A stretch of DNA of 64,000 bases from Cycas panzhihuaensis (taxonomy: Eukaryota; Plantae; Cycadophyta), in contig CM041465.1 in assembly GCA_023213395.1 (NCBI GenBank), forward strand, positions 96,789,741 through 96,853,740, in the 5' to 3' direction. Every line of letters begins with the position of its first letter. Position 1 is the stretch's first letter. The translations under genes were made by a program, and so were the position numbers. Shown piece after piece: positions 11,413-48,732 of this stretch. Below the pieces are notes generated by a model, which saw nothing but the letters and a program-made list of their open reading frames with translations, had not been told where the DNA came from and searched no databases.

Positions 11413-12327
11413 TGTGTATGGGCAAAATGACACACAATTTTGAAATGAAATTTGACTTTTGGATCATAAGCAGATTATGGTTTAGGTCATGATTATGAGT
11501 AGTTCATGGTTTGGGTTGTGATCGCAAGTAGTTTATGGTTCTGGTCGTGATCGCGAGTAGTTTGTGGTTCAGGTCATGATCACGAGTAGTTCATGGTTTG
11601 GGCCATGATCATAAGCAGATCATGGTATAAACTGTGATCATGAGTAGATCATAGTTTGGGTCATGATTATGAGTAGATCATGGTTTAGGTTATGACCATG
11701 AGAAAATCATGGTTTAGGGCAAGATCATGAGCAGATCATAGTTTGGGTTAAGATTATAAGTAGATTGCAGTTTGGGTTGAGATTGTAAATAGATCATAGT
11801 TTGGATCAAGATTGCAAGTAGATCATAGTTTAGTCGAGATTATGGGAAGATCATAGTTCAGGTTAAGATTATGAGCAGGTTATAGTTCAAGTCAAGATTA
11901 TGAACATATCACAATTTAGTCAAGATTGTAAGTAGATCGCAACTAGTTATGAACTGATTGTAGTAAAAATATAATTGTAAACAAATTATAATTGAACACT
12001 TGAATGTATTCTATAATACCAGTGAATCAACTATTATTTTAGTTGTAATCAATAATGATTGAAAACCATTGGGAGTTATGGATAACTGAGAGTGAAAGGG
12101 GGAGGGCAAACAATAATGATGATGATGAGTACTTGGTAGAATCTTATTATTGTAAGCTTGATTAGCCATTAGCTTTCTGTGTACTATTAGGTCTACATCT
12201 GGTTGTAAGAGGACCAAATGCAGTTCCTTATCTTAATGATATTATATTTTGTGTTAAATCGGTGTTCCTTGTACATGCCTTATTCATTGATGAATATTTT
12301 AGTAGATGAATAGATGCATGACACACA
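11413..12327 (+). repeat. 5' LTR of element C
   Basis: TGTGT...GACACACA; colinear with 32838-33748 but heavily diverged. Confidence 0.9.
11462..11950 (+). repeat. Tandem array, ~17 x 29 bp, in the 5' LTR of C
   Basis: Unit such as gatcatgagtagatcatggtttgggtcat; contiguous units, no spacers. Confidence 0.95.
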
Positions 12328-12899: not shown

Positions 12900-14892
12900 A
12901 GTCATTATTTACCAATATAGGAGGAAGTGGTATTCAACCACTAAGTAGAATGGGCTAAGGGAGTGGAGCAAGACTAGTCAAACCTTATATTATTGTAAAA
13001 GCAACTAGACCTTCTCAAGTATACAATTTGATGGATTAACATAGCTAGGAGATCATTTAGCATTATTAAAAAGTATGCTAAAAATAAAGAAAGTCATAGA
13101 TCCAAAGGATATAAAAGCCTAATTTTTTTTCTACTTTACAGGGAGTAGCAGTTACATGGTTCTAGTATGTTGCAACATAAACTCTATCATGGGATAGATT
13201 GCAAGACCAATTTTTTGATTGAATCCAAAACTTGAGAGACCCTATGGCCATTTTTGAAGCCCTAGAAGAAACAAAGCAATATCCCAGAGAATCTATAAAT
13301 GATTTTGATGGCCAAATAAGGATAACAATGAGTAAAGTATAACTAATAATAGGAATTAGTCTAATACTAATGATGAAATATTTTGTTCAAGGCCTAATTC
13401 CACAATTAAGAGATAAAGTCATGTTGCAGCTAATGAATAATTATGAATAAGTATGCGAGCTAGCTTTGAAATTTGAGAATCAAATGAAGAATGTATACTT
13501 TTAATAGGCAAATAAACAGACAAGACAAATAGGTATGTTTTTTTCTCAACCATCATCAGTAATATAGACATGGGGAACATATAATGAAACACTCTAAATA
13601 GGAATAAATCTAGAGATTGAAGTATTGAGAAAGGAGGCTAAAACATTAAAACAACAACCATCAGTGGTAATACTGGCTAATATGCACCAGAACTAAGAGA
13701 TGGAGAAAGTACAAGCATAATTAGCTAGGTTGCATTTAGAAAAATCATGAGATAATATATTATGTCCAACACTATACAATAAAAAAGGACATCTAAGGAA
13801 TAAACATAATAAAGTGCTAGCATGGAGTGAATATTATAAGAAAACAAACGATAATATGTGGGAATGTTGTTCTTGACCTAAGAATGATATCTACAATGTA
13901 TTCCTAAAAAATTTAGAAAAAATAAAAAGGCAATATAAAGGGAAGACAAAGCTAGTCCATTATTTTCTATGCCAAATATGGGGTTATTTTAGATCATACT
14001 ATCTGTTAGAGAAAAAGGGTGGAGAATTCATCTGTGAAGAATATGGACTAGAAGATCATAAGTGGATAAATTATCCAAAAAATAAAACACAGAATGCTAA
14101 TTTAGTTATGATCATTCTAGATAAGGAAGTACCCCTCCCGTTGCAAACATAAAGTGGGAAGGTAACTTCCACACCTATCCAAGATACTTTCTTGGATCTG
14201 GTACTTTAGAAAGCTAAATTCTACAAGATGTAATAGGTGAAGCTTAGCAAGAAGAAGCCTAACATGAGGGACAATTTAGAGGACAAACATATAAGCGATA
14301 AGCAAGCTATAAAAAAATTTAGTGAAAAGAAGGTATGAATCTATGGTTAAGGCTTCAAAGGGTTAATGATTTATTAATCAAACTAGGAGTCTTAATTCCT
14401 ATTGCAATTGTATTTAAATGGTATAAGGCAGGTTATTTTCAATAATTAGTTCTAGACTAGATAAAAAAGCTTGTAATGAGAGTTGTCAAAGAGAAAGGGT
14501 TGACTTAAGGGTGCTAATAATTATTTTTGGGATGATGCTATGTAAAATAATCATGGATGGAGGATTAAGAGTTAATATGCTCCTTGAGTCTTCTTGGATT
14601 GAATTGGGAAGGCTAGAAATGGTTGCATGAGATTATTCAATAAGATTGGCCAACTAATTGTAAGTGAGACCAATGGGAACATTAATGAATGTTTCAACCA
14701 TGATTACAAGAATCATTATCCTATTAGATTTTGTAGTGGTGTAGGTGCAGAATAGAAGGAGAATGTATACAACATTATTAGGTAGATCTTGGTTATTAGC
14801 TACAAAAGTTAATTAAGACTAGGGAGAATTTACATTTATGCTGAAAGAAAGAAATAAAGCTATGACACTACCATTATACTCAGATGGCCTTC
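12900..14892 (+). pseudogene. gag: Gag + protease relic of element C
   Basis: QFDGLT*LGDHL...STLQGVAVTWF...WDRLQDQF...KQYPRESINDF...FVQGL; four decayed CCHC knuckles at 13750-14080; protease IIMDGGLRVNML...LLGRSWL. Confidence 0.85.
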
Positions 14893-15077
14893 TGAGGTGA
14901 CCTGAAGTCACTCTCGTAAATAATATCTAGAAAATATTATTAATTGAATTGAATTACTTCCTTTGATACCTATCTATTCAGTATGTTATGTATTTATGAT
15001 TGTCTATTGAAGGGATGTGATTATTTATTAATAGTCACCCCCCTTCATTAACTAAGTTAATTAATAGGTTTGTTACA
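14893..15077 (-). repeat. 3' LTR of element E
   Basis: TG...CA termini; matches 20792-20976. Confidence 0.95.
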
Positions 15078-15109
15078 AGGCCTCCCTTTTGAAAAATACT
15101 TTGCCCTCA

Positions 15110-18100
15110 AAGCATAGACGTATTATCCCGTAGATGAGAATGTTTGTCCACAATCGATGCCCATTCCCAAGAAGCGTCTTCCACTGGAAGTTGTTTCCAT
15201 TTGATGAGATATTCTCGAATAGTTCTGGATCTTAATTGATGCTCTCATACTTGAAGGATGGTTTTGGGAATTAAGAGGACAAGACCTTCTTTATTTAGCA
15301 TTGGTAGTTCAACTTACGCTAGTATTCCTATACGCAATCATTGTTTTAAACAAGACACATGAAAAACATTATGAATATGAGAATTAGTAAGTAAGTTAAG
15401 GGCATAAGAAACTTCTCCTATTTTTTTGCATATGCGATATGACCCATAGAAATGCAGATTGAGTTTTTCTTTTTTTGACTTTTTAAGAGATGTTTGTTTA
15501 TATGGTTGTAGGCATAAATTAACCCAATCACCTTCTAAAAAATTTTGTTCAATATGATATAAATCAACTTGTTATTTACTTCTATTTTGGGCATTAGAAA
15601 GATGTTCTTTTAACATTATAATTATATTTTTTTGATTCTTACAACTACTCATCAACTGTTGGAATACGTGAATTTGAATAGACCCAATCTTTTAATGATG
15701 TAGGTTCATAACCATATAAAGCTTGAAAGGGGGTCATTTTAATAGATATGTGATAAGTTATATTATACCATCCTTTTGCCAAATGTAACCACTTAACCCA
15801 ACTACTTGGTTTATCACTAACAAAACTTCAAAGATAAGTTTCTAAATATTTATTAACAATTTCAGTTTGACCATCTGTTTGAGGATGGTAATTGGTGCTC
15901 ATATTTAGGGTGGTACCTAGTTGTTTAAATAATTCTTGCAAAAATTTACATTGGAATTTAAGATCTCTATCACTGATAACGACTTTTGGTATTCCATAGA
16001 GTTTGTAAACTTCCTTCATGAATATTGATGTAATCTAATGAGCTTTAAAATCACTTTGTATAGCCATGAAATGAGCATATTTAGTCAAACGATCTACCAC
16101 CACAAAGATACCATCTTTATTATCTGATTTTTGTAACCTTGTGATAAAATCCATACTTATACTTTCCCATTTTCTATGTGGAATGGGTAAAAGTTGTAAT
16201 AATCTTAGAGGAAGAATATTTTTATATTTTGCAGTTTGACATACTTCACACTCACTAACGAACTTCTGGTTTTCCTTTTTCATTCCCTTCCAGAAAAAAG
16301 AATTCCTTATTTGGCAATATATTTTATAAAATCCTATATGTCTTGTTGATAGTACGATATGTTCTTCCTTCAAAATCTGTTGTTTAAATTTTGATTTTTA
16401 TCCTAGATAAATTCGACCTTTATACCATAAGATATCATTTTTCCATTCAAAATTTTTTTGAGGTTCCCTTTTAATTTTATTAATTAGTTGGCTTATATCA
16501 AAATCCTTAGTGTATTCTACTCGTATATCATCTAACCATCCTAGACTAATCATAGTAATGGATTAAAGTTGGGCTTCTTTATCTCGACGTGATAGAGCAT
16601 CAACTAATACATTTGTTTTTCCTTTTTTGTACCATATTTCAAAATCATATGTTTGTAACTTTGTAACCTATTTTTATTATTCGGTTGACAATTCATGTTA
16701 TTTTAAGAAATATTGTAGGCTATTATGATCTGTTTTGACTAAAAAATTGCTTCTTAATAAATATTGTTACCATTTATGAAGAACATGCATAATGGCTAAT
16801 ATTTCTTTATCATAAGTAGTTTTAAGTTTTTCTCGCTTATTTAATTATTGACTTTCACAAGCAATGGGTATACCTTGTTTCTTTAGAACAACTCCAATGC
16901 CTATTCTAGAAGCATCACATTCTATGGTAAATATTTTTGGAAAATCTGGAGTTACTAATAATGGTGAGGTCATCATAACTATTTTGAGATTTCAAAACAT
17001 GAATATGCTGCCTCATTCCACCTAAAGGAGCCCTTTCTAAGTAGTTTAGTAAGATCATTAGTAATATGTGCATAATTCTTAACAAATCTTTGGTAATAAC
17101 CAGTAAGTCCCAAAAATCCTCTTAACATTTTGATTGTACATAGAGTTGGCCATTCCATTATTGCCTTAATTTTATCTAGATCAGCTTTAACTCCATCTTT
17201 AGAAATGATATGTCCTAAATAATTTATTTATTATTTGCTAAAGCTAATTTAGATTTTTTTGCGAAAAAACTTTGTTCTTGTAAGATATCCAGGATTTTAT
17301 CTACATGGTTGAGGTAATCTTCCTAATTTTTGTTGTAGATTAGTATGTCATCAAAGAATACTAATACAAATTTCCTTAGATAAGGTGAAACACTCTTATT
17401 CATGGTTGCTTGGAAGGTAGCAGGTGCATTACATAATCCAAATGGCATTACTTTGAATTCATAATATCCTTCCTGTGTAGGAAATACTATTTTATATGTA
17501 TCTTGATCTCTTATTTTAATATGATAATATCCAGATTTGAGGTCCAATTTTATAAAATACTGAGCACCATAAAGTTCATCGAGTAACTCATCAATTCTTG
17601 GAATAGGAAATCTATTTTTAATGATAATTTTATTGAGGGCCCGATAATCAACCTACATTTTGAATGAAACATCCTTTTTTCTTGCTAATACGACCAGTGT
17701 AGCAAAGGGACTTTTACTAGATGTAATTATCCCAAGATCTAATAATTCATGGACTATTCATTCAATTTCATTTTTATGCTTATAAGGATGTCGATATGGT
17801 TTGATTATAGTAGGATTTATATTTTTCTCTAGCTCAATTATATATTCCATACCTTAATCAAGTGGTAATATAGCTAGAAGTTCTCAAAATACAATACCAT
17901 ATTTATCTATCAGATCCTTCATTTGACTGTTCCTTATTTCATGTTGATTAGTTTCCATCTTAATTGAAAATAATTGAATCACACAACCTGGATACCCTTT
18001 GTGAAGTAATTTATTCATTTGGTATGAAGTCACTTACTAGGGTTCTGGCATTAACATTCCTTATAATGTGATGGTTCTATTATTCTCTTTAAATCTTATA

Positions 18101-19607
18101 AACATTTCTTGTAAGTTTGTTTTATAAGTTCCTAACGTCCTTAACCATTGACTTCCCAAAACTACATTGACTCCTCTAATTTTAATGACAAAAAAATCAG
18201 CCCTCAAAACATAATCTTCGAATGAAATTTTAAGGTTTTTTAAGATTCCTTCACCATGAATTTATTTGTGGCCACTAATTTAAACTTGAAATGTAGGAAT
18301 TTTTGTGATTTATAACCTTAGAGTATGAGCAATATGGCAGTCAATAAAATTATAGGTACTACCTAAATCAATTAGAGTAATTAATCCTCTTTTTTTTTAT
18401 GAACCCTTTGATCTTTAATGTTTCTGGCATTGCTATTCCTACTATAGCTGATAAGGATATTATGGGTGCTTCTTCAATTACTTCTTCATTATTAACATAA
18501 TCCTCTATTTCTATAGGATCCTCTATTTCTTCCATAGATTCTTTGTTAGAGATGACTAATGAATATAGTCTTCACTCTTAACACTTATGCCCTCTTTCTC
18601 TTTTCTTATTACACCAATAACAAGTTCCTTTTTGTCCATGTTCTTCTATTTCTTTTTCTGATAGTTGACAAAATCTTTAATGATTGTTTGATGGATTAAT
18701 TCCCTTTATAACATATGAATCATTTTTATTACTTGTTTCCCTTATGATATGCGGTTAGAAAGTCCCTTTATTTCTCAACATTGGTGGTTGATAATAAGAT
18801 TTCTATTTTGACTCAAAGGCTTTTTCCAAATGAATGGCCTCACTTAGTTCTTGTGGTTTTTGTGCCTTAACATCTACCTTAATATCATTTTATAATCTTG
18901 ATATAAATAGTTCAATCTTTCGTGATAATGAAAAGTTAGTCACCTTATAGACCAATCCCGTAAAATTTTGACAATACTCTTCTACTTATGTTTTCTGTTG
19001 ATGTTTACTTAGTTGGGAAAAATGATGATTATTCCATGTGTCTTCAAAATATTCTTCTAATGCTATCACAAACTATTTCCAAGATGCTTCGTTCTCATTT
19101 TCTTCCTATTCTTGCATCCACATCAACCACCAATCATATGCCTTACCTGACATGTACATGACAATATGTAATATTCTATCCTTATCATCTTCAATGGATT
19201 GTAGTAGGAAAAATATTTCTAGTTTTTGTAACCATTCATGAATGGTATCTTTTGAACCGTCGAACTAAGATATGTTTATTTTTCTTCCTCCTATTCTTTT
19301 TATATGTTTATTATGTTTTTAAAGTTGAGCGGTAATGTAATCGGCCTTTGTCTATTTTTTTTTTTAATGATGGATATAAATGGTTCCATTCCTTGTTGTA
19401 TTTGATGATTGCCTCTTCATTATCATTATTTGTTGAAGTGGTGTTTAATAGGAAAAATGTATTTCTTTCTTTTTTATTATTCAGAAGAATCTTGCTTTTA
19501 TTAGCTATTTCCCTTAATGTTGTTCTCATATCTTCTAATCCACCCTTGATTCCAGACATTTTCCTCTTAATTTCTGTCACTTCTTCTTGTAACTTTTTTG
19601 CATCCAT
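15110..19607 (-). pseudogene. gag-pol relic of E (Gag, PR, RT, RH, INT, chromodomain)
   Basis: RT DLKSGY...[14 protein letters not shown]...VFFDDILIY; INT WESISMDFI...[12 protein letters not shown]...[10 protein letters not shown]; chromodomain-like REYLIKWKQLPVEDASWE at ~15165-15220; many stops. Confidence 0.92.
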
Positions 19608-19880
19608 ATTTTTGATAATTATATATATAAAATTCCACAGATTATTTTTTATACTCGATATAAGTAATTGAAATTATTTATTTTTACCACTATAATTGGA
19701 TTATGGTTACGCGATGAATGATAGTAATAACAAGTTCCTCTATTAATAAATATCTTGACAATCTTTTGTTCTATCGTTAACGAATCCTTAAATGCTATCC
19801 AACATCAATTATTTTTAGACTGAAATTATTTATTGATGTTATTATTCCAGTCCTTTATTTGGTTATATCATAATCCCTTG

Positions 19881-19906
19881 ATATATATATATATATATAT
19901 ATATAT
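19881..19906. repeat. (AT)13 microsatellite in the leader of E
   Basis: Direct reading. Confidence 0.95.
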
Positions 19907-20791
19907 CAATTGCTTGCATCTTAACTCAAACTTGTTAATAAGTATAAGAATTGTATTATACTTATAACTCTTATGAGGTATTAATATTGGTTCTATTGAA
20001 CTAATAGTTGATGCTTGAGTTATGGAATCTCATATATATATACCAGAGTTGAATGGCCTGATTAATATTGATGCAACTGCTGGTAATATTGTCAGTCGTT
20101 GACTTATATATTATAATATATCACCACCAGACTATGTAAACATCAACGATATCGATAACAATATTTCTGTATGGTAATTAACTCGTCACAACCTAATTAA
20201 ATGGAGAATATAATAACACCTATTATTGTTCTTTATTAATTGGCTAGTAAGTGTGAGTTTAGAAGATTTGAGATGAGCAGCTTGGACAAGAAGGTGACAA
20301 CGATATAACATAGATCAACACAGTTTATGTAACAACTAGACTGTAATAAAGAGGGAATAATGCAGCTGATAAATGCATTAACATAATGATAATATGTGAT
20401 GATTAAGATGGCTATTGTGATGTCTTCATAATATTTACTATGACTATGTATTGGCTGCAATGTGTGAGGCTTGTATTTAATCCTATTGCATATTATTTAT
20501 GACTGAATATTAGAGCTGCGATCAATGATTGAGTAATAGAGCTGCCGAGGATTAGATGAAGACGTATAGTAGAATGACCAAATCACTGTAGGATTAATGT
20601 GATGTTTAATGTATCTTTAGTGATTACAGAATTGATGGTGTGTACACTTAAGAGATATGGCAGGGAATGTGTAAGCAACTACTTAAGCGAATTAGGCTAG
20701 CTGTAGAAATATTTAGAGGCACTTAGATACTGGAGACAAAATGTTAATCACAATTTGAAGATACCCCAAAAGGTCCTACTCTGATACCACT

Positions 20792-20976
20792 TGAGGTGAC
20801 CTGAAGTCACTCTCATAAATAATATATAGAAAATATTATTAATTGAATTGAATTACTTCCTTTGATACCTGTCTATTCAGTATGTTACATATTTATGATT
20901 GTCTATTGAAGGGATGTGACTATTTATTAATAGTCATCCCCTTTCATTAACTAAGTTAACTAATAAGTTTGTTACA
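20792..20976 (-). repeat. 5' LTR of element E
   Basis: Adjacent to the iMet PBS; matches 14893-15077. Confidence 0.95.
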
Positions 20977-21283
20977 CCCTCAAGTTAAAAAGATAGCTGA
21001 TAAAGAATAAGCATCATCTACAACCATGGGATCAGAATCCATTGTAAGCCTATATTCAAAAATTGTTTACTAGCTTCAACCAAATGCACCAAGTAGTGCA
21101 TTATCAACATACATGATGAATTAGTTGCAGAATGCTTAAGAAGAAACTAAATTTGCTCTATGCTACAAGCTAGAAGGATGTATAGACTCTCTAGTATTAG
21201 AAGACTCAACAAAAGATGAATTGGTAAATCTCCAAATAGAAGAGGTCATAAGGAGAATGGAAGAAAGTTTCACAAAAGGAGAT

Positions 21284-21482
21284 AAATTCTAGGGTCAAGC
21301 AAATTAGGAAAACAACCATATAGAATATTATACTCAATTGTTAATAAATAATAATCAACATGAAAATTTTTATTACTTGTTCTTATTATCTCTTGAAGGT
21401 TAAGCTACCATATGGTTTTCAGTTTATGGTAGTAAATTTAGATCATAGAATGAATTATGCAAATTTTTTTATTAAGATTTCA
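21284..21482 (+). pseudogene. Extra capsid-like module 1 within Pol of element C
   Basis: KF*GQAN*ENNHIEYY...YYLFLLSLEG*ATIWFSVYGSKFRS*NELCKFFY*DF matches the retrotransposon Gag pattern F-G...H...LF..SL.G.A..WF...W.EL...F...F. Confidence 0.7.
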
Positions 21483-22536
21483 TGATCCAGGAGGATCTAC
21501 CATATGTTTACAGGATGCAGAAAATGCTAGGCATTGGCATAACTAAAAGAGATATGGCCAAATGGTATCAAAATTCTATGAAATTTTGTTTAAAGGGATA
21601 AGACACATCTCACTAGATGTGTAAAAAAGGTGGGGTTCAGAAAATATCATTTGATTAGAGTTCAAGCCTTGTCTTTGCATAAAAATTAATCCCACAGTTA
21701 GCAGAAAAAAACAGAAAATATATATTTTGATTATATAAATAGAAACATGGCCAAATGACATCCAAATGAGCTAAAATTTTGAGAAAGAAGAGGAGACATA
21801 TGTTCCGATACGTGTACAAAATTTTAGCTGAATTGGAGTCCATTAAGGTCAGTTACAAGCCACAACTTTTATGAATTGTATGAAGGCCACTTGGATAGCA
21901 GAAAAATAGCAAATACATATTATTAATAAATGAATAAAAACGTAGTCAAATGACATCCAAATGAGCTGAAAATTTGAGGAAGATGAGGGGACATACGTTC
22001 CTATACGTGTACCAAATTTGAGCCAAATTGGAGTACGTTAAGATCTGTTACAAACTGTAACGTTTTAAGAATTGTATGAAGGCCACTTGGACAACATGCA
22101 TTCTGGTGGTTAGTGGTTATACTTGCATGATTGCCACTTGTTAAACATGCAATTCAGGTTTCTTTCTATAAATTGAGCCCTTCTACAGGTTGGAGAGGTG
22201 GTTCTTGGAGACTTGACTTGGGAAGCATCCTTGGAGAAGCATTTGGAGGGTTGGAATCCCCCTTATGGTATAATTGTAACATTTACTCCTTGTAATTTTA
22301 CCATTCTTTTGCTAGTTGATTTCTCCACCATTAAATGGAGATTTTCATGGTTTAATAAAAGTATTACTCATCATACTTTTGGATCAATGTCAAGAATAAT
22401 TGATTTGGTGTAGAATTTTCCTTTCATGGGCTCATTGTTGTTTTGATGTTATTGAGCTTTCTACACTAACTCCCAGGATCTCAAGGAGGAAAGGTTGATA
22501 ATTGATTTCTTCACCAACTAAGCTCTTTTGGGACCA
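21483..22536 (+). repeat. 5' LTR of element F (contains ~195-bp internal repeats)
   Basis: TGATCC...GGACCA; matches 27143-28195. Confidence 0.95.
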
Positions 22537-22667
22537 TATTTTGGTATCGAGCCTCGATCTTTGTTGTAGGGACTTGAATGGTACAAACAAGGAAAGGATA
22601 CAAAGAGAAAGGTGAAGACTTTCTTGTGTTGCAATCACCAAGAAGACAAAGAAAGAATCCAAGCACC

Positions 22668-25600
22668 ATGGTGAAAAGAAGATGGAGAAATTAGATTTGA
22701 AAGGCTTGAGAAGAACGTCAAGCCTTGATGCAAATGATGACCCACCTTCTACCTCTAGTTAAAGGAAAAGGCAAAGAGAAGGAATTTGAAGGAGGATCCA
22801 CATATGACCACGACCATGAAGAGGAAGAGGAGGAGACCTTAAAGCACTCTTTTGAAGAAAGCAAGGGTACTTCATCTCATCAACCCTTCAAGGTGGAGGC
22901 AAAGTTGGATATTCCAACTTATGATGGAGAGGTAAATGCTGAAAAGTTGGACCATTGGTTGGATCAACTTGAAACCTACTTCACAATCTATGCTTATAGT
23001 AATGCTCAAAAGCTTTCATTTGCTAGGCTCAAGTTGTGTAAACATGCATTGACATGGTGGAATGCATATTTAAAGACTCATGATGTATCTTCTTTTCATG
23101 GAGGGATTTTAAGAAAATAATAAAGAAGTAATTCTACCCCATAGGTCATGAGGAAGACCAATGGGTCACTTGGCAATATTTACGCCAAGGGAGAGGTGTA
23201 AGTGTCCAAGACTATACTTCTTTATTTTTTAGGCATGGCATGCTACTCAGTATTAATATGGATGAACATGTCACTCTTATGAAATTCATTGGAGGATTAC
23301 ATGAATACATAAGGAAGGAACTAAGGCTTTTTAAGGTTCAATCCATTGGAGAAGCAAGTAGGATGGCTATGACAATAGAAAGTAAAAGTAAGAAATCTAC
23401 ATTCATATCTAAAGATTCTACTTTTACTTCTAATAAGTATGAAAAGAATCCTAAATGGCACTCATCAAAAAGGCAAGAAGGAAAGAAGAAAAAAACTAAT
23501 TTTGTTAAAAGTTCTAACTATTGTGAGCATTGTGATATTAGTGGTCATATTACAGCAAAGTGTTGGAAGTTGCATCTAGAACTAAAGCTGAAGCATATCA
23601 AGGATATGGAATTAAGAAAGAAGGAAAAAGGGAAAGCACTACTTTCCGAGGTGGAGATTCAAAGTGAAGGAGAAGAAGAGAAGGTCACTCTAGTTACAAA
23701 TTATGAAGATGATGCTACAAGAGAGGAACTATTTCACTTGAAGCTTCAAGTGGGAAATAGTATGATTGGTGCCATTATAGATCCAGGAAGCCAAAAGAAT
23801 TTGATCTCAGAAAGTTTGGTAAAGAGCATTGGTTTGGTAACTACTCCTCACCCTCATCCATATCCTCTTGGTTGGATCCATAAAGATGTGGAAATGCAAA
23901 TATCAAAGCAATGTACACTTAAATTTTCCATCACTAATGATTTTGTTGATGAGGTAATATGTGATGTGGTGCCTCTGGTTGTTTGCCTTGTTGTGCTTGG
24001 TTGTCCCTTCTTGTGGGTTCGTGTTGCTCTCTTCTATTGAAGGAGAGAAAGTATCGATTGATGAAGGATAACAAGGGCTTCATCATAAAGGCCACAAAGA
24101 AGCACTTGGATAAGATAGCATTAATTTCAGCTACTCAAGCAAAAAGGATGATCAATGCATGTGGTAAATTTGTCATCTTAATGGTAAGGAGAAAAGAAGA
24201 GCCAAGAGATGAAGAAGGTCCTTCTACTCACACTCTTCTTATATCACCTAAACAAATGCAACAAATTGAGGAGTTAAAGACAAGGTATGATATTCTATTT
24301 CAACATGTTGATGGGCTTCCACCAAAGAGAAAGATAGAGCATGAAATCACTCTTGTAGGAGATGCACCATTACTTAATGTTGCTTTGTATAGGCACTCCA
24401 TTGTAGAAAATAATGAGATAAAGAGGCAAGTTGAGGAGTTGCTTGATCAAGGGGTCATAAGACCTTCATGTTTACCTTGTGGGTCACCAATTGTCTTGGT
24501 GCCTAAGAAGGATGGAGGATGGAGAATGTGTATAGATTTTTGTGCTTTGAATAAAATTACAATTAAAAATCGCTACCCTTTGCCTCGTATAGATGATTTG
24601 CTTGATCAAATTCAATGCTTGTTATTTCACTAAATTGGATTTAAAAGTGGTTATCACCAAGTTAGGGTCAAGGAGGAGGACACATGGAAGACGGCCTTCA
24701 AAACAAAGCAAGGACTCTTTGAATGGATGGTTATGCCTTTCGGATTGTGTAATGCTCCGCAACATTCATGAGGTTAATGAATGAAATATTAAGGCCTTAC
24801 TTGGATAATTTTGTTGTTGTCTATCTTGATGACATTTTGATTTTCAACAACACATGGGAGGAACATTTGCAGCACATAGAAGAAGTTTTAAAGACTATGG
24901 CTAAGCATCATTTGAAGCTTAATGTGAAGAAGTATGAATTTGGCAAGGAGAACTTGATCTTCTTAGGCTTTGTGGTTGGAGGAGGAAAGTTGAGCATTGA
25001 TCCACTCAAGACTCAAGCCATCCTCAAATGGCCTAGGCCAACAAACATCATAGAGGTGAGAAGTTTTTTAGGAGCTTGTCAATACTTGAGAAAGTTCATT
25101 CTTCATTTCTCACAGTTGACACCTCTACATGGATTGACAAAATCTAGTAGAAAGTTTACTTGGGGTTCCAAGGAGGAAGAAGCCTTTCTTCTTTTAAAGA
25201 AGAAAATTTGTGAAGCACTTAGGTTTTGGCAATGCCAAATTTGCAAAGGCCTTTTGAAGTCGGGCGATGCGAGTGGAAATGCGATGGAAGCTGTCCTTAT
25301 TCAAGATGGGAAGCCTATTGCGTACCATTCGGAAGTCTTCACCTCTCAAGTGAAGAACTACCCAACATATGATCGAGAAATGTTCGCACTTCATCAAGCA
25401 TGCAAGCATTGGAGGTCATACTTGCTCGGAAAAGAGGTTGTAGTTCATACCGATCATAAGCCTCTTCAATTTTTACAAACTCAAAGTAAATTACTGAAGC
25501 AAGACACATGAAGTGGCTGAGTTAGTCACAACACCTCAATATTATAATTAAGTATAAAAGGGATCTAATAACAAAATTGCGATATGTTATCTAGACCACC

Positions 25601-27101
25601 TTGTTCCACTTCTTCTTCTACTTTTGTTTGTAGTTCTCTTATGAGTTTGCGGTGGAACCAATGCCTCATGAAGAGTACAAAGACTTGTACCATGAAGATG
25701 AAGCTCTGAAGGAAGGATTAGAGAACCTAGCGAAAGGAAGACCTTCCCGACTTGCTTGGAAGGATGGTCTACTTTTCAAAGGGAGCGACTCTATGTTCCA
25801 TAAAAAGGAGACAAGATCAAGTGGCTTAGAAGCCCATACTTCTAAAGTATGGTCACTTTGGTATAGAAGACTTTAGCAAATTTGAGAAGATATGTTGTAA
25901 GGTCAAAATGCAAAATGATGTAAAAAAATATGTAAAAGGATGTGTAATGTGTAATACTTCTAAGCCTTCTTCTAGAAAATTAGGATTGTATACACCACTA
26001 CCTATTACCACTAGGCCTTGGGAAAGTATCTCCATTGATTTTTTAGGGGGACTTCCCATGACTAGGAAGGGACATGATTATCTTTTTGTTGTTGTAGATA
26101 GGTTTAGTAAAATGATATGTCTAATACCTTGTAAGAAGACGATCACAGTGCAGGGAGGAGGTGAGTTATTCTTGGAGCATGTATGGAAGAATTTTGGCTT
26201 GCCTTCTTCCATCATTTCAGATCGGGACACTCGATTCCTTTCATCATTTTGGAAGTCACTATGGGAGATGATGGATACCAAATTGAAGAGGAGTACAAGT
26301 TTCCATCCTCAAACAGATGGACAAAGTAGTGAACAGAACTTTGGTATATCTATTGAGGGGATACAATTCCAAGCATCCAAAGACTTGGGATGAATCATTG
26401 GCTTTTCTACAATTTGCTTTTAATAGAGCAATGTATGCATCACACTCTAAAGCACCTTTTGAAGTTTGTTTGGGATACTTACCTCAAAGTCCATTTGACT
26501 TGGAGTTTTCCATGCAAGCTAAGGAAGGATCCGTCAAGAGAAGGAGGAGCATGACAAGGCTTTAAGATACTTGGAGAAGATCCAGAGAGTCCACAAAGAA
26601 GTACATGATCAACTTCTAAGGACTCAACAAAAGTACAAGGAAAGACATGACAAGCATAGGCAAGAGTGTACTTTCCAAGAAGGAGATTTAGTATGGTTAT
26701 ACTTGAGCAAGGAGAGGTTAAAAGGAGAAGGTAAGAAACTCAAACCTATAAGGTATGGACCATTCAAGATTTTGAGAAAAGTAGGTGGCAATGCTTTCCA
26801 ACTTGATCTTCCACCTTATATGCAAATATATTCAGTAGTAAATGCTGAATACTTAAAACTCTTTGAACCCTCCATGCTAGATGAGGAACAGGACCAGTTC
26901 ACTTTACCTTCAGTTGATGATTTGTATTTGGAAAGTGAGGAGCCTCTCAAGGAAGATTGTATCTTGGAGAGAAAATCTACCAAAACAAGACATAAGACAC
27001 ATGAATCTTTTAGTATTGGAGTAGCAGGGCAATTGCCTAGTAAGGCCAAGTGGTTTAGTAGGCAACAAAGAGAACAACACTCCCCCCATCTCCAATTCTA
27101 A
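22668..27101 (+). pseudogene. gag-pol of element F, broken by many small deletions
   Basis: Gag KLDIPTYDGEVNAEKLDHW; knuckle CEHCDISGHITAKC; [14 protein letters not shown] and VYLDDIL; RH DASG, DHKPL; INT PWESISIDF, FHPQTDGQ, YGPF. Confidence 0.93.
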
Positions 27102-27142
27102 GCCAAACAGGAGTTGGCTATTTTCCAAGGAAGGGGGAGCCA

Positions 27143-28195
27143 TGATCCGTGAGGATCTACCATATGTTTACGGGATGCGGAAAATGCTAGGCATTGGCAT
27201 AACTAAAGAGATATGGCCAAATGGTATCAAAATTCTATGAAATTTTGTTTAAAGGGATAAGACACATCTCACTAGATGTGTACAAAAGGTGGGGTTCAGA
27301 AAATATCATTTGATTAGAGTTCAAGCCTTGTCTTTGCATAAAAATTAATCCCACAGTTAGCAGAAAAAAATAGAAAATATATATTTTTATTATATGAATA
27401 GAAACATAGCCAAATGACATCCAAATGAGCTAAAATTTTGAGGAAGCGGAGGAGACATACGTTGTGATATGTGTACAAAATTTGAGCTGAATTGGAGTCC
27501 ATTAAGGTCAGTTACAAGCCGCAACATTTATGAATTGTATGAAGGCCACTTGGACAGCAGAAAAACAACAAATACATATTATTACTAAATGAATAAAAAT
27601 GTAGTCAAATGACATCCAAATGAGATGAAAATTTGAGGAAGATGAGGGGACATATGTTCCTATATGTGTACCAAATTTGAGCCAAATTGGAGTACGTTAA
27701 GATCTGTTACAAACTATAACTTGTTAAGAATTGTATGAAGGCCACTTGGACAACATGCATTCTGGTGGTTAGTGGTTATACTTGCATGATTGCCACTTGT
27801 TAAACATGCAATTTAGGTTTCTTTCTATAAATTGAGCCCTTATACAGGTTGGAGAGGTGGTTCTTGGAGACTTGACTTGGGAAGCATCCTTGGAGAAGCA
27901 TTTGGAGGGTTGGAATCCCCCTTATGGTATAATTGTAACATTTACTCCTTGTAATTTTACCATTCTTTTGCTAGTTAATTTCTCCACCATTAAATGGAGA
28001 TTTTCATGGCTTAATAAAAGTATTACTCATCATACTTTTGGATCAATGTCAAGAATAATTGATTTGGTGTAGAATTTTCCTTTCATGGGCTCATTGTTGT
28101 TTTGATGTTATTGAGCTTTCTACACTAACTCCCAGGATCTCAAGGAGGAAAGGTTGATAATTGATTTCTTCACCAACTAAGCTCTTTTGGGACCA
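27143..28195 (+). repeat. 3' LTR of element F
   Basis: Follows the PPT; followed by TSD tttca. Confidence 0.95.
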
Positions 28196-28210
28196 TTTCA
28201 AAAATAAAAT

Positions 28211-28430
28211 AATGAATTGGCAATATTTCAAGACAATGATGACCCCATGAATCATATAAGGAAGTGTGAATAAAATTAGAAAAGGAAGTAAATTTCAAAA
28301 TATGAATGGGTACAAAGATGGGCCTAGACTCTCAAAGGAATTCCATGTTTGTGGTATAACCTGTGTGAAAAAAAGGAAGTTGATAGAATGGGATTCACTA
28401 AATAAGAAGTTTTACAAAACTTTCTTGTAT
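28211..28430 (+). pseudogene. Extra capsid-like module 2 within Pol of element C
   Basis: IFQDNDDPMNHIRKCE...EWVQRWA*TLKGIPCLWYNLCEK/KLIEWDSLNKKFYKTF (one frameshift). Confidence 0.7.
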
Positions 28431-28639
28431 CATAACCATGATTTAGGGATTTTAGAAATAATGAGCACCTTTGAGATTAGAATTGAGTAGAGTTATAATC
28501 AAATTGAAGTGACAGTTAAGGATTGTGAATTTCCTGGTCAATATTTTGTATAGAATATGGAAATAAAATAATTGATCAAACACCAACATACAAGTTGAAT
28601 AAAGATGGAAAAATAGTGTAGAATGAATAATTAAAAATA

Positions 28640-31215
28640 TAACAAATAAATTTAGATGCAGAAGAATATCCCCAGATGATCTCAATAGGAAACTATTGGG
28701 ACAAGGATACATTTCAACAAGCCATAAATTTATTTTTAAATACAAAGATGTTTTTGCCTGGTCCTATCAAGATTTAAAAGGCATACCACCAGAATTAGGA
28801 CAATATCGAATTGAATTGATGGAAGGAATAAAGCTTATACATCAATGTACTTATTAGATGAATCCAAAATATAAGGAAAAAGTAAAGGTGGAATTAGATA
28901 AATTATTTAAAGTCAACTATATATTTGAGGTTGAGACTAGTGAATGGGTAAGTTTAGTGGTGGTGGTACCCAAAAAGAACGAGAAGCTTCATGTCTATAT
29001 GGATAATAGGGCCCTAAACAAATCAATAAAAAAAGATCTATTCCTAATACCATTTACAAAATATGTTTTGGAAAAGGTAGTAGGCCATGAAGTATATTCA
29101 TTCACAGATGGTTTTGTGGGTATAATCAAGTGAAAATCATAGAATAGGACCAACTAAAGATGACTTCTATCATAGAATAGGGAACACATATATACAAGGT
29201 TATGCCCTTTAGATTAATGAATGCACTAGCCACTTTTCAGAGAATAATCCTAAATATTTTTTGGCAAGCAATTGGTAAGCCAATTGAAGTATTTTTAGAT
29301 GATTAGACATCATATGCATTACTAAAAAATCATTTAGTGAATTTGAGATCAATGTTGGAAATGTGTCAAAAAAGTAAGCTCTATTTAATCCATCTAAATA
29401 CACATTCTTGGTTTCCTTTGGATCCCTCTTGGGGTATATTATAAGCAAGGATGGTCTACGAATAGACCTAGGTAAGGTAATAATAAATTTAAACTTTCTG
29501 ACACCAAGAATGATAAGGCAAGTAAAAGTTTTTCTTGGCATGACAGGTTGTTATCAAAAATTAATAAAGGGATATTCATAGATTGTAAATCCCTTAGAAA
29601 GTTTACTCAAGAAACAGATAGCTTAGAAATAAGAATTATAACAGCAATTAGCATTTGGTTTGTTAAAAAAAAAAAATCACAAAATCTCCTATTCTAAAGT
29701 TTCTAGATAGGAATCGACCATTCCATGTACATGTCGATACTTTGTTGATGGTAATTGGATGTGTTCTAATCCAACCTAGTTATAGTAACATAGACCTGCC
29801 TATCCATTTTCTTAGTAAGAAATTGACTCCTGCCACATAGAATTATTTTATCACTGAGTGGGAAGGCTTAGGCATGGTCTAGACCTTGTAGAAATTTAGA
29901 TATTATCTATTAGCCAAGCCATTTATTTTTTATATGGATTATCAAGCCCTAAAATATTTGATAAATAAACCCATTTTGCAAGGTAGAATTAGTAGATGGT
30001 TGATGTTGTTTCAAGAGTTTAATTTCAAAATTATCATTAAGAAAGGGGATAAACATATAGTACCGAACATGCTATTAAGAGAAGTAGATAGGGAACCAAC
30101 TATAAGAGCATCATATGACTTTCCTAACATACAATTATTTTTTATAGAAGCCATACCTAAATGGTATAAAGGGATTACTGAGTACCTGGCTACTGGACAG
30201 TCAACTAAAGGATCAGAATGAGTGAAACAACACAATTTTATTTGTAAAACTTTTCCCTTCCAATTGATACAAGGAATGCTATACAAGATGGGTTTAGATG
30301 GTATGCTAAGATGTTGTGTATTAGAGCACAAGGCATAGGGTATCTTATAGGAAGCACATGAAGGAGTTATGGCTAAGCATCAAGGTGTGGAACCCACAGT
30401 CTGAAAGATTTTGTTAGCAGGTTTTTGGTGGCCATTGATATTTGAAGATGTGGTAAAATAGACAAAGAGTTGCAATATTTGCCAACAGGTGGATAAGCCT
30501 AGTAAATGTCACTTTATACCTCTACATTTGATTCTAGCACAAGCACCCTTTGAGAAATAGGGTATGGATTTTATCAGATTGATAAGTCCTTTGGCAAAGT
30601 GTATGAAGGCCAGATACATATTAGTGACCACTAATTTTTTTACAAAATGGATAAAAGCTCAACCTTTAAGACTTTGTAATACAAGAAGTACCACAAAAAT
30701 TTTGTATGAAGACATTATTATCCATTTTGGTTATCCATTAGTGCTAGTATCAAATTAGGGTAGTAGTTTTTCCAATAGTACTATAAAGCATTTAACTAAT
30801 AAATTTATGATTCAACATTTTTAATCTTCTCCCTACTACCCTAGAGCTAATGGCTAGGTCGAAAGCACTAATAAAATTTTAAAGATAGCATGATCCAAGA
30901 TCTGAAATGAAGGAAGAATGGATTGGGCAAAATGACTACATTTTGTACTTTGGGTGGATCAGACAATAATTAAGTGACCACATAAATAAACACATTTTCA
31001 GTTGGTGTATGGGTTAGAAGTAGTACTTCCATTAGAGTTCCAAGTGGAAAGCTTTCAAATGGTAGTTTAACTATGGATGAATGAACAAAACTCATGGAAT
31101 AAGAGAATTATGGAGTTATTGAAGTTAGATAGAAAAAGGGCACAAGCACTGTAGGAAATAGAAATTCAAAAACAATAATGGAAGACTTCATATGATCAAC
31201 ACTTAAGAGTTTTTG
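28640..31215 (+). pseudogene. pol: RT-RH-INT relic of element C
   Basis: IGNYWDK...YKDVFAWSYQDLKGIP; MNPKYKEKVKVELDKL...SEWVS; DYQALKYLINKP..QGRISRW; INT GMDFI...YYPRANG*VE. INT C-terminus appears deleted. Confidence 0.9.
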
Positions 31216-32720: not shown

Positions 32721-32837
32721 AATTAAAAAATTATTATTGTTTTGGGGGAGGGGGGGAGGTGGGGGGGAGGAATACATTGAAAAAGTAATTTTTATGCAAA
32801 TAAGTAAGGGTACTTATTGATTTTGTGATGAGGGAGA

Positions 32838-33748
32838 TGTGTTGTGCAAAATAGGACACATAATTTTGAAAGGAAATTTGACTTTTGGATCACGAGTAGT
32901 TTATGGTTCAGGTTGTGATCATGAGCAGTTTGTGGTTCAGGTCATGATCACAAGTAGTTCATAGTTTAGACTATGATCATGAGCAATTTGTAGTTTAGGC
33001 CATGATCATAAGTAGATCATGGTTTGGGTTAGGATCACGAGCAGATCATGGTTTGGGTCATGATTGCGAGTAGATCATAGTTCAAGCTATGACTAGAAGT
33101 AGATCATGGTTCAGTTCAAGATCACACGCAGATTGTTGTTCAGGTTGAGATTATGAGAAGATCATAGTTTAGGTCAAGATTACTAGCAGATCATAGTTTA
33201 GGTCAAGATTGCTGGTAGATCATAGTTCGAGTTAAGATTACGAGTAGATTATAATTTGGTTGAGATTACGAGTAGATTGCAGTTCATGTTAAGATTACAA
33301 GCAAGTCACAGTTTAGGTCAAGATTACAAGTAAATCATAATTTGGTTAAGATTACAAGTAAATCATAGTCAATCACGAATTGATTATAGTCAAGAATGTA
33401 ATTGTAAACAAATTGTAATTAAGGACTTGAATGTATTTTAGAATACTGGTGAATCAACTGTTATTTTGGTTGTAATTAATGATAGTTGATTGGCAGTTAT
33501 GGATAAATGAGAGTGAAATAGGGAGGGCAAGCAACAATAATTTTGATGAGTACTTGGTATAATCTTGTCATTATAAGCTTGATTAGTTGTTAGCTTTTTG
33601 TGTACTATCAAGTCTACATCTAGTTGTGAGAGGACCGGACATAGTTCCTTATCTTAATGATATTATGTTTTATGTCAGATTAATATTCCTTGTGCTTTCC
33701 TTATTCATTGATAAATGTTTTGGTAGATAAATAGGTGCATGACACATA
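32838..33748 (+). repeat. 3' LTR of element C, with ~17 x 29-bp array at 32888-33377
   Basis: Follows the PPT; ends gacacata (CA decayed to TA); followed by gtgag. Confidence 0.9.
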
Positions 33749-36700
33749 GTGAGAGGTAGGGTATTTATCCCTAAAGGTGCCTTCTTATACCCATTGTACC
33801 CTTGGCATTTCCAAGGGACTAGCTCAAGAGCCTTGATGCATAATTTCTTGAGCATCTAGATGGGTATTATATTTACTAAGGAGTTGTTGTTTGCAATGGT
33901 CCTCTTCAAGGCAAAGTTTAGTGTTTTAATTATAATGGTGAAAGGGTAATACTAATGGAGTTATCTCTCACAAGTGGTTGGTAGATCATATAGATCAAAG
34001 GAAATGAGGGGTGGGCTAGGTGATGTACTCACTACATAAATATGGGCCTCATTTTTACCAAGAGCCTCTAAGAGAAGGGCTCATTAATCAGGGTAACTCT
34101 ACAAGACATCCATCATAGACATTCCTATAGATATGGTGTGAAGCTCCTTGATGATAAAGAAGGTCTTTCCCTTACCTATGGGTTAAGGAAGAGCCCTCCT
34201 AAAGTCATACTATTCCAGTCAAATATATATGGCTTTTGGGATGATTAGGATCTTAGTGGGGGGAGTCTCTTAAGGAGGTTATTATTACAAAGTAGATGCC
34301 TTACTAGCCTCCTTCTTCACTTGTGAATAGGTCACTGGATATACTTAAGTGGTCTCAAGCATGTGGATGACCCTCATACCCTTATAATTAGGGCATGCTG
34401 ATTTAGTTTGAGTTATAGGGCTTAAGGGAGATGATAAATCCATCGAGGCCTTACCCTTAGGTTGATTTGATGAAGAGGGAGGAGGGATGCCCTTACATTG
34501 AGATTAAGGGTAGTCCCTACCTTGATGATTTAAGGGTTGTGGTACTTAATTAGAGATATTATGATTAGGGAAGGGGTCTTTATGAATTAGTTATTTAAGG
34601 TTTGGTTTTAACATGGTTTGGGATGGGGGATCCCTTAGTAGATTAAGTTAAAGGTGTTAATTCCAACACTAGGAATCATCATAGGTGTACTAACCATGGA
34701 CGAAGCACTATTTCTTTTTAGGAGGAGGCATTGACCTCTTCTCTTATGCAGGCTCAAGGCCCTATTTTATTAGTGGCATGGTTTGGGTGGTTTGATGGAT
34801 TGGCCTATAATTTTATGCTTGGAGTTGTTGGTTGCTTTGGTTTTATGACAGTTGAAGACTTTAAGCCTTTTAGAACCCATTTAAAGGAACAAATGATAGA
34901 AGTGAAAGGGTCCAAGGCCTTGTTAGATGTATTGGTAGAAGACTAAGACAAGGGTTGTTGCCCCCTTTAGTTGCATCATGGAGGTAGTACCTCATGATGT
35001 AACGTGTTCCTATTAATCTTCTTGAGAGCAGCTTGGATCTCAATAGACTCTAGGGCCAAGCATTTAGTAATAACCAAATCACTTGTAGTCACTCCCATTT
35101 TGAAGACCTTGGCATTGACCTTAGGAAACAAGATATTTACAAAGATATCTCTCTTCAAATCCTTGGGCAACATGGCCTTCATGGAATGAAGAAGGTAATG
35201 GAAGTGATGGATGAAGTCTTGGTTGAGCTCATCTTACCCTTGTTTAAGTGAGAGGAGGGCTTTAACTCCACTCTTAAATGGTTTTGCAATGTCAAAATAG
35301 TTGATAAATAAGTCAACTAATTATTAGAAGTAGTTAATTAAGTGGGTTGGAAGGGGATTAAACCACTTGAGAGAATCTCCCTAGAGTGACTTAAGGAAGA
35401 GCTTTATCAAATGTAGTCATAAACCTAATAATTAATACATGCCATGGGAAATTCCCTAGCATGATCAATAGAGTCTTGGGATGAAGCACCATCAAATTTA
35501 AGCATTTCTAGTACATGAGGGGATAAATTAGTCTTTAAGGCCTCCATGGAAAGGGGGCTTAACATATAGTCTACAAAAGGACATATCCCTAGTTGGGTTA
35601 GATTGTTAGGAGGAGGATATATAGGTGGAGGATAATATCATGTTATGGCATAGGATAAATAAGGTAGAGGTATAAGATAGGAGGTATGCCCTTATTGGTA
35701 AGGGGTATATGAGGGCATGGGATAAGGGGTCCCTTCAAATTGATGGGGAAGGATCAAACCTTGATAAGGGTAAATAAGATATGGAGGTGGCTAAGGGTTA
35801 CTTGACCCCCCTTATATTCAGATAGAATAAGAGGGGGTAGCATAGGTCGTCACCCATTGGGTAATGGAAGTATGATAAGGTAGCATATAGGGTGCCACAA
35901 GGTCCCCTTAATGGGGAAAAGAGGATGGAATTGATTACATCGCATGGGAAATGGGATGCAGAAAGGGGTTTTACTCAAAAGTCTCTCCTGTAGGAGGAGC
36001 AACCCTATAGGGGTAGAAAGGATCCACCCCACAGGTAGGGAGGGGGTGAGAACCACTATGCCCCCATTATTATCATGTATAGTTGGGTGGGACAAAAGGT
36101 TAGTGATCCACTTGATATAGACAGGGGTGAATTGGCATTCCTTCTCCTTATCCTAAGTATCAGGGATGTGGGGGAATAGTTGGAATGATGGGAGAGACTA
36201 AGACCGTGTTAAGTTAGGGAATGGATATTTGAAATGGAGGGATTCTCATCATAGCCTGGGAGTGGGATTAGGCTTATGTAACTCCTTTGCTTGATAGGAT
36301 ACTTATGGAAATAAATGCCATAACCACCTCTTGAAAAGGGGGTATGGTTGTTTGAGTTAGAGTAGAGAGAGGGATTAATACAAAAGCTGACATTGTACTT
36401 AAGAGAAGCTAGTGGGCCCATCTTAGGGTTGTTTCTCTAGTCACTACTTCAAAATCAGCCCTTAAGGCCTCTATCATATCCCATGGAGGGGCATGGGTTT
36501 GGTTAGAAAGGGGAATATGCCTCCCTTGCTGGCTTAAATGAGTGGGAAAAGGAAATGGGATTTGTTCAGGATCTTAAATAAAGTCATGATGTGGGGGTCC
36601 CTAAATGATATAAGCATGGAGGAGTATTAAGCCCTAATAGAACTTGGTTAGGTCTTATTAATAGTGTGATGAATCACCACCTATATTGATGAGATCTTCA

Positions 36701-42508: not shown

Positions 42509-42658
42509 TGTTAGGATACCACTCCTTAATGATAATTTCACACCAATATAATAAGCAAATAACTCCAAAAAGAGCACTTGTGTTGTAATACCCTTTGAGG
42601 GGGGAACCTCCCAATTACATGCAATAACAATAACATTTAAGATACCATACTCTAAGGA

Positions 42659-42721
<63 letters not shown>

Positions 42722-42929: not shown

Positions 42930-42949
42930 AAATCCCCCCCTTAAAAAAG

Positions 42950-48230: not shown

Positions 48231-48732
<502 letters not shown>

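Follow-up and report, generated by a model that had tools for sequence, protein, structure and literature searches.

Few extra domains have, to our knowledge, become fixed in the polyproteins of LTR retrotransposons, namely the chromodomain, an additional RNase H, a dUTPase and an ALKB-type demethylase. Each of them has taught something about replication or target choice. The junction between protease (PR) and RT of Ty3 is a stretch without an assigned role that forms part of the processed polyprotein; as far as we know it is short and has never been described as capsid-like. Truncated capsid pieces are known as gag-derived restriction factors, such as p22/p18 of yeast Ty1 and Fv1 of the mouse. 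The former arise from an internal start within gag and the latter is a domesticated host gene, both being separate products. Within Pol, Tat elements with their 'copia-like' structure carry an additional RNase H between PR and RT (PMC13468544), and the fungal PosPlaTy3-5 carries a dUTPase between the same two domains (PMC2864245). In plant LTR elements, extra domains are considered to become fixed only rarely (PMC9289625). A literature search for an additional gag in Pol or for a PR-RT domain returned only the RNase H and dUTPase cases, and the architecture described below is apparently undescribed.

The window, that is the entire 64,000-nucleotide stretch of Cycas panzhihuaensis DNA analyzed here, contains an old and inactive plant-type Ty3/gypsy LTR retrotransposon, element C, which was split by two later insertions, E and F. 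Pairing by blastn placed the 5' LTR of C at ~11413..12325 and the 3' LTR at ~32838..33746, both on the + strand in direct orientation and with 77–84% identity. A 29-bp tandem array (~11366–11943) is held in the 5' LTR. Decay prevents a base-exact placement of the outer LTR ends of C, and the examination of TSDs covered E and F. Element E (14893..20976, +) is bounded by 185-bp LTRs of ~95% identity and the TSD CCTTC/CCCTC. Element F (21483..28195, +), itself of the Ty3/gypsy type, has 1057-bp LTRs that are 96.7% identical and is flanked by a perfect TSD of 5 bp, TTTCA, at 21478–21482 and 28196–28200; its capsid, PR, RT, RNase H, integrase and SH3 domains were all detected by Pfam. Both are foreign to C, and the LTR pairs and TSDs of E and F agree with the nesting proposed in the earlier note.

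Membership of C in Ty3/gypsy (Metaviridae) is shown by its LTR pair, by a G-rich polypurine tract at ~32745–32770 just ahead of the 3' LTR and by the position of the integrase after RT. The order PR-RT-RNase H-integrase was obtained by tblastn of P0052, P0037 and P0099 together with Pfam RT_RNaseH. All parts lie on the + strand. C's own gag, a Retrotrans_gag-type capsid region at 13052..13315 (phase 2, with stops), reaches 19.3–19.5 bits on our own gag HMMs in 125-aa windows and a Smith-Waterman z of 7.3 against the gag ORF 862–1752(−) of the window, for which a search for homologous proteins gave 2 matches only. The protease is located at 14517..14819 (phase 0; tblastn of Riccia P0052, residues 19–118, E = 1e-8). 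The post-PR stretch of the polyprotein at 20982..21280 (phase 2) continues, by coordinate arithmetic, the reading frame of PR beyond the inserted E and includes an open piece of 50 codons (21140–21289) that runs into the first module described below. A conserved pre-RT linker at 28643..28760, read in phase 2 until near 28755 and in phase 1 beyond, was matched by tblastn to residues 215–266 of P0052 and to residues 228–247 of a metagenome element, L003. RT, RNase H and integrase occupy 28726..31208 with several frameshifts and stops: similarity to RT begins at ~28726, RNase H extends to ~30218 (Pfam RT_RNaseH matches at 29892–30218 and 29667–29837) and integrase covers 30528–31208. After removal of E and F, ~335 codons separate the end of PR (14819) from the pre-RT linker (28643), compared to ~97 in a liverwort relative.

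The window copy of C is functionless now, being riddled with stops and frameshifts as well as split by the two later insertions. As the tblastn alignments show about 3 frameshifts per kb in its RT, arguments from reading frames were given little weight. RIP was considered as the cause of decay and rejected; with CpG observed/expected of 0.0–0.37 and (CA+TG)/(AC+GT) of 1.2–1.55, the values point to methylation-driven decay instead.

Two gag-like modules, CA' and CA'', lie between PR and RT of C on the sense strand. The earlier note had described them as colinear with Pol and without LTR or TSD of their own. This holds, as seen from the mapping of PR and RT and from blastn and tblastx searches of the window, which found neither LTR or TSD remnants belonging to the modules nor internal similarity of the modules to the rest of the window. 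Module 1, CA', extends over 21281..21482 (+, phase 2) and resembles gag over the part bounded by the F.G and W..L...F...F motifs; in de-nested C, module 2 begins ~8 codons past it. For the comparison, gag HMMs were built from PF03732-annotated proteins, one profile from 120 Tanacetum proteins matched by region 40–170 of P0148. Pieces of C were searched separately or read through with X at each stop, frameshift and element junction. Scanned as a whole frame, CA' scored 9.3 bits on profiles built without CA' or CA'' sequences, the highest of 60 dinucleotide shuffles reaching 3.5. In 125-residue windows it reached 17–20 bits on our own gag profiles, level with C's true gag and above all background. 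Smith-Waterman alignment gave z = 4.7 against the gag-domain comparator, the consensus of our own gag-domain HMM (a partial domain from Tanacetum database proteins, of which the HMM scores are independent), and z = 3.8 against C's own gag. The similarity between CA' and CA'' is not significant (p = 0.2).

Module 2, CA'', was detectable only with one frameshift allowed. Its first half at 28208..28372 (+, phase 2) corresponds to HMM profile positions 17–63 and gave a tblastn HSP to residues 81–120 of L003. The second half at 28374..28505 (+, phase 0) follows a 1-nt frameshift in the A-run 28368–28376, and the frameshift-aware scan peaks at the junction 28372. The corrected scores of 8.9 and 13.0 bits compare to background maxima of 7.6 and 10.1. 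In both scans CA' and CA'' rank right behind the known gags and ahead of every other locus. BLASTP of the unmodified phase-0 piece 28260–28487 yielded E = 6e-4 to a second metagenome element, L002, and E = 0.022 to L003; a protein search with the same piece gave no candidate homologous protein. In Smith-Waterman comparisons CA'' reached z = 12.6 with module 2 of L003 and 8.8 with that of L002, to which it is clearly homologous, 8.7 with the gag-domain comparator and 5.9 with C's own gag. Alignment of C's gag to CA'' at the DNA level was marginal (z = 2.1, p = 0.04).

The Gag-type pattern reported earlier for both sites was expressed as a regular expression, composed after both module sequences were known. 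It matches only CA' and CA'' in the six frames of the window and occurs ~0 times in 100 shuffles. The phase-2 reading given before for the second half of CA'' turned out to be the wrong frame; it is the phase-0 pieces that match L002 and L003. The related proposal that both modules stop before the MHR-like segment is valid for CA' only. Past the frameshift, CA'' runs to ~28505 and is aligned there with the part of gag holding the MHR-like segment, and its description as N-terminal lobe only is wrong.

The two metagenome elements, L002 (Ga0181464_1008073) and L003 (JACSEJ010003567.1), show the same arrangement. L002 has the order PR, module 1, module 2, RT, with a PR matching the protease of P0066 at E = 9e-7 and, as the counterpart of C's post-PR stretch, ~330 bp that separate this PR from module 1; in L003 module 1, module 2 and RT were found. 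From the start of PR to the RT piece we measured 1571 bp in de-nested C and 1558 bp in L002, compared to 868 bp in the module-less L001. A short junction without modules was likewise found in Riccia P0052 and in the angiosperm proteins P0066 and P0063. CA' has no significant pairwise likeness to module 1 of L002 or L003 (z about 0), and position and spacing are the sole basis of this orthology. Between L002 and L003 the modules show pN of 0.36–0.40 and pS of 0.67–0.93, RT having a pN of 0.18. Since the pN of the modules equals that of the neighboring linker, the constraint on them is mild. The homology to L002 and L003, the equal spacing and a non-synonymous change of about half the synonymous one nevertheless argue for a lineage trait under selection. 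The earlier note had held that the modules would be unrelated inserted fragments if other family members lacked them; a pair of modules is present in both L002 and L003, in the same place and with the same spacing. Its proposal of a genuine Gag-PR-X-X-RT architecture in place of inserted scraps is thereby supported, whereas the capsid identity of X is only moderately backed. From the compared sequences, the two modules look like conserved element architecture and no junk. The module-bearing copies known are three (C, L002 and L003), all with stops, and a scan of viral contigs found nothing.

We consider it probable, judging from these comparisons, that C is a dead copy of a Ty3/gypsy lineage with the polyprotein Gag-PR-module 1-module 2-RT-RH-INT. 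The modules would jointly make up ~165–215 codons of the PR-RT junction and most likely derive, as a strongly diverged tandem, from the N-terminal part of a Retrotrans_gag-type capsid domain. The comparison with L002 and L003 shows that they were translated within Pol and retained by purifying selection in the active ancestors. After processing by PR they may remain on the N-terminus of RT or be freed beside it, and as capsid-interacting pieces they might help to place or hold Pol within the Gag lattice. A bolder version can be put forward only tentatively: C might represent an unrecognized Ty3/gypsy lineage, probably from non-seed plants or algae, with three capsid-type modules, the normal Gag and two diverged, capsid-derived tandem ones beside RT in Pol, the latter having a part in particle assembly, be it as tethers of RT to the capsid lattice or by adjusting the assembly itself.

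The capsid ancestry of the modules appears moderately supported, and the main competing explanation concerns this point. The PR-RT insert could be a lineage-specific helical junction region without capsid ancestry, its gag-likeness being due to convergence in an AT-rich, decayed translation. Several results are in accordance with such an origin. Pfam gave no gag or capsid match on any piece, neither on the 20 stop-free pieces of C (20–76 residues) nor on the complete 62-residue module 1 of L003. For C this miss is powerless, because the pieces are too short and its undisputed gag pieces were missed as well. Of the profile comparisons proposed in the earlier note, similarity was seen with our own PF03732-derived HMMs (17–20 bits for CA', 9–13 bits for CA''), and the Pfam model itself did not match the short pieces. 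Module 1 of L002 and L003 has no score on our own gag HMMs, sequence searches of the PDB with the modules were empty, and the two modules of C do not resemble each other significantly. An AF2 model of L003 module 1 alone, all other module copies being broken by stops, contains only three helices with a mean pLDDT of 63 and a pTM of 0.35, which is too poor for a fold search. Comparison of the module 2 profile with the gag alignment by hhalign resulted in P = 3e-4 over 71 columns, with a probability of only 39%. On the other side, CA' attains the same HMM score as C's true gag and lies above 60 of 60 shuffles, and CA'' has the z of 8.7 given above against the gag comparator. Moreover, the hhalign match and two marginal best BLASTP matches of L003 module 1 to unrelated gags (E = 0.039 and 0.033, with alignments starting exactly at the capsid domains) are three independent weak matches, all in register with the start of the capsid domain. 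We therefore regard convergence as unlikely, though deserving of serious weight.

A further explanation accepts the gag origin and the conservation, and differs in the role. By analogy to Ty1 p22 and Fv1, the modules could be released as small proteins acting in trans as dominant-negative or decoy factors, either against the own element in the sense of copy-number control or against competitors. Truncated capsid pieces are established restriction factors, CA' is a truncated domain, and the constraint on the modules is mild. The sequence gives no sign of separate expression or release, however, and modules in frame inside Pol would be made in the amounts of RT and not in excess, which renders this role improbable compared to the favored one within Pol.

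That the modules are private to C, as remnants of further nested insertions or as a one-off template-switching chimera without a role in the family, is very improbable. E and F did both insert into the same 1.1-kb stretch, and no close family member of C was found in protein databases: a search of representative proteins with its RNase H piece gave a best identity of 57%, and 0 of 150 matches reach into the junction. This view is largely refuted by the homologous modules of L002 and L003 at the same position and spacing, and no LTR or TSD remnants accompany the modules. Chance, that is a pattern seen by eye in a low-complexity, AT-rich translation, is refuted by the shuffle and background controls and by the homology to L002 and L003, and can practically be disregarded, even though the DNA at 28395–28440 gives a W..L..F-like pattern in two frames and the second half of CA'' had first been read in the wrong frame.

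If the lineage with two capsid-derived modules in Pol is real, a capsid-derived tandem insert beside RT would be a new entry among the fixed extra domains, and capsid domains would be reusable building blocks inside Pol. It would bear on the packaging of Pol into Ty3/Arc-type capsids as well as on the origin of those partial capsids that were later used by hosts or elements as restriction factors. A concrete object for such questions is at hand in a conserved region of ~200 residues, the position and relatives of which are known. For annotation, it follows that gag-like matches inside Pol are not necessarily artefacts of nesting.

In comparison to the described systems, C resembles canonical plant Ty3/gypsy elements (Gag-PR-RT-RH-INT) in its LTRs, its polypurine tract, the single gag upstream of PR and the usual order of RT, RNase H and integrase. 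It differs from them by a PR-RT junction enlarged by ~240 codons, which hold two further gag-like modules. Similar to the Ty3 junction, the insert is a stretch of the polyprotein between PR and RT. With Tat and PosPlaTy3-5, C shares an extra lineage-specific segment in the same Pol junction. There, the segment is an additional RNase H or a dUTPase, whereas the insert of C appears non-enzymatic and gag-like; RNase H or dUTPase Pfam matches at E ≤ 1 were absent from the junction pieces of the window, L002 and L003, a weak negative in view of their shortness, and these pieces gave no match to another Pfam family either. As in the case of Ty1 p22/p18 and Fv1, partial capsid-like sequences exist beside a full Gag. 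In contrast to these restriction factors, the modules of C are embedded in Pol as a tandem, and their conservation extends across element families.

The 64-kb window consists of a stack of LTR retrotransposons nested in one another. Its base composition is the mark of C-to-T decay driven by methylation, of the kind that plant repeats undergo; fungal RIP as the source is ruled out by the CpG depletion across the whole window (observed/expected 0.0–0.37) together with a (CA+TG)/(AC+GT) ratio of 1.2–1.55. The old Ty3/gypsy element C, with LTRs at about 11413–12325 and 32838–33746 that are just 77–84% identical to each other, hosts two further elements. Element E (14893–20976) exhibits LTRs of 185 bp and the TSD CCTTC/CCCTC, and element F (21483–28195), of the Ty3/gypsy class, LTRs of 1057 bp with 96.7% identity and a perfect TSD, TTTCA, at 21478–21482 and 28196–28200. 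These LTR pairs and TSDs confirm the reconstruction of C by removal of E and F that was proposed in the earlier note. Both insertions (14892/20982 and 21482/28201) are independent and lie in the PR-RT junction of C, 500 bp apart after de-nesting.

Both LTRs of C also contain an array of a ~29-bp tandem repeat (11366–11943 and 32763–33369) with at least 8–9 units of 60–76% identity. An additional LTR element was found at 42509–48733 (LTRs ~420 bp, 87–97% identical), with an RT ORF at 45087–45539 (−) and a weak gag-like match at 46833–47066 (−). Another gag family, of the Athila/Tat-like capsid type, is present in at least three or four copies in the window: 862–2437 (−), 55891–56397 (+), 35117–35580 (−) and ~54082–54178 (−). 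At the left end of the window, which is rich in GC (0.52), the copy retains ORFs of 296 and 375 codons; only two relatives of this copy came from the databases, both of them Logan fragments with 81–83% identity.

The domains of C were placed by tblastn of 150 relatives collected with its RNase H piece; the liverwort Riccia sorocarpa and angiosperms supply the closest named protein relatives. PR was located at 14517–14819 (phase 0), the pre-RT linker at 28643–28760 (phase 2), RT from ~28726 (initially phase 1), RNase H up to ~30218 and integrase at 30528–31208; C's own gag lies at 13052–13315. This copy of C is dead. None of the 150 relatives matched 20982–21482 or 28201–28640 in tblastn. From the end of PR to the pre-RT position de-nested C comprises ~335 codons, compared to ~97 residues in the Riccia protein P0052. 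The two modules CA′ (21281–21482) and CA″ (28208–28505, with one frameshift), described in the earlier note as extra capsid-type modules, are situated here, within Pol between PR and RT.

C's first RT piece, used as query in a metagenome scan, matched four loci. Two of them, L002 (Ga0181464_1008073, 48% identity) and L003 (JACSEJ010003567.1, 43%), are the nearest module-bearing relatives and carry two modules in sense frames upstream of RT, so the modules are not private to C, against the refuting case named in the earlier note, in which other family members would lack them. Module 1 of both loci opens with an F/Y-D-G motif; module 2 shows Y-S/T-G...H at its start, followed by W-V, T, P, W-Y, E, W and F..TF. 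The protease at the start of L002 was recognized by BLASTP to the Asp_protease_2 region of the database protein P0066 (E = 9e-7). L002 and L003 share 72% identity in RT and only 37–40% in modules and linker. CA″ is similar to module 2 of L003 (z = 12.6) and L002 (z = 8.8), and the tblastn HSPs lie in line with the RT match, their frame switching at the proposed frameshift site. Unmodified stop-free pieces confirmed the phase-0 reading of CA″ (E = 6e-4 for L002, 0.022 for L003). CA′ showed no significant pairwise similarity to module 1 of either locus; its equivalence rests on position and spacing. PR start and RT piece are 1571 bp apart in de-nested C and 1558 bp apart in L002, compared to 868 bp in a third locus, L001 (Ga0068629_1007663; PR 108–422, RT piece at 1006), where the PR-RT junction is canonical and short. 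The homologous module 2 and the matching spacing indicate that the insert is a lineage trait. L001 lacks the modules, yet its RT-piece identity to the window (45%) is comparable to that of L002 and L003; the explanation is either a loss of the modules on the way to L001 or an RT piece whose shortness prevents the lineages from being ordered.

Gag ancestry of the modules is likely but not proven, as profile, BLASTP, hhalign and AF2 results are mixed. Pfam gave no match on stop-free pieces of CA′ and CA″, but had no power, since C's true gag remained blank as well. Two gag profiles were built without the modules. The seed profile combined a gag family that has three copies in the window with the database protein P0148, and the larger one included 128 additional domain instances from PF03732-annotated Tanacetum proteins. 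Translations were scored with X at each stop, pieces being searched separately or joined with X at breaks. Over its whole frame CA′ reached 9.3 bits with the seed (maximum of 60 shuffles, 3.5) and 6.1 bits with the larger profile; in 125-residue windows it scored 19.6–20.3 and 17.1 bits, compared to 19.5 and 19.3 bits for C's true gag. CA″ without a frameshift remained at about 2–3 bits (seed) and 1.5 bits (larger profile). When one shift was permitted at sampled junctions over the entire window, the maximum fell at 28372, within the A-run 28368–28376, with 8.9 and 13.0 bits; the top unrelated locus reached 7.6 and 10.1 bits, and frameshifted CA″ ranked next below the known gags. It aligns to profile positions 17–112 and is thus more than the N-terminal lobe to which it had been assigned.

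In Smith-Waterman comparisons with shuffling, CA″ matched the consensus of a partial gag-domain profile built here with z = 8.7 (0/3000 shuffles) and C's own gag with z = 5.9 (p = 0.0003); the values for CA′ were z = 4.7 (p = 0.001) and z = 3.8 (p = 0.005). CA′ and CA″ were not significantly similar to each other (z = 0.8, p = 0.2). A three-sequence module 2 profile aligned to the gag alignment in hhalign with P = 3e-4 and a probability of just 39%. Module 1 of L002 and L003 gave no score on our gag profiles or Pfam. L003 module 1 was aligned by BLASTP with the F gag ORF (E = 0.039) and the database protein P0067 (E = 0.033), and in either protein the top alignment begins at the first capsid-domain residues; AF2 of this module, the sole complete stop-free one, yielded a pLDDT of 63.

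In-frame stops in the window modules (21289–21291, 21401–21403, 21446–21448 and 28325–28327) occupy conserved tryptophan positions of gag or the relatives, as does a stop at a conserved W of L002 module 2 (967–969); for the modules, TGG to TAG or TGA changes by methylation-driven transitions fit this pattern. P0154 and some other annotated Tanacetum "reverse transcriptase domain-containing" proteins scored 400–500 bits on a 131-residue gag query, which implies several gag copies per protein; most likely these are gene models merging nested or tandem elements.

Between L002 and L003, where synonymous sites are saturated or nearly so, pS and pN were 0.67 and 0.36 for module 1, 0.93 and 0.40 for the module 2 core, 0.73 and 0.40 for the linker, and 0.93 and 0.18 for RT. 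The modules thus evolved under mild purifying selection, not stronger than that on the linker.

Position and length of the modules are conserved among diverged elements, as is the sequence of module 2. The modules, probably capsid-derived, would be translated together with Pol and, after PR cleavage, stay on RT or adjoining RT, where they might touch the Gag lattice and aid packaging or positioning of Pol. A possible alternative is that they are freed as a dominant-negative fragment.

Full-text searches over an incomplete body of literature brought up no account of gag-like modules within Pol, so that novelty is not proven. According to an orchid Ty3/gypsy paper, extra domains are rarely fixed (PMC9289625). 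Similar to C, "copia-like" Tat elements, with an additional RNase H (PMC13468544), and fungal elements, with a dUTPase (PMC2864245), accommodate an accessory domain in the same PR-RT junction.
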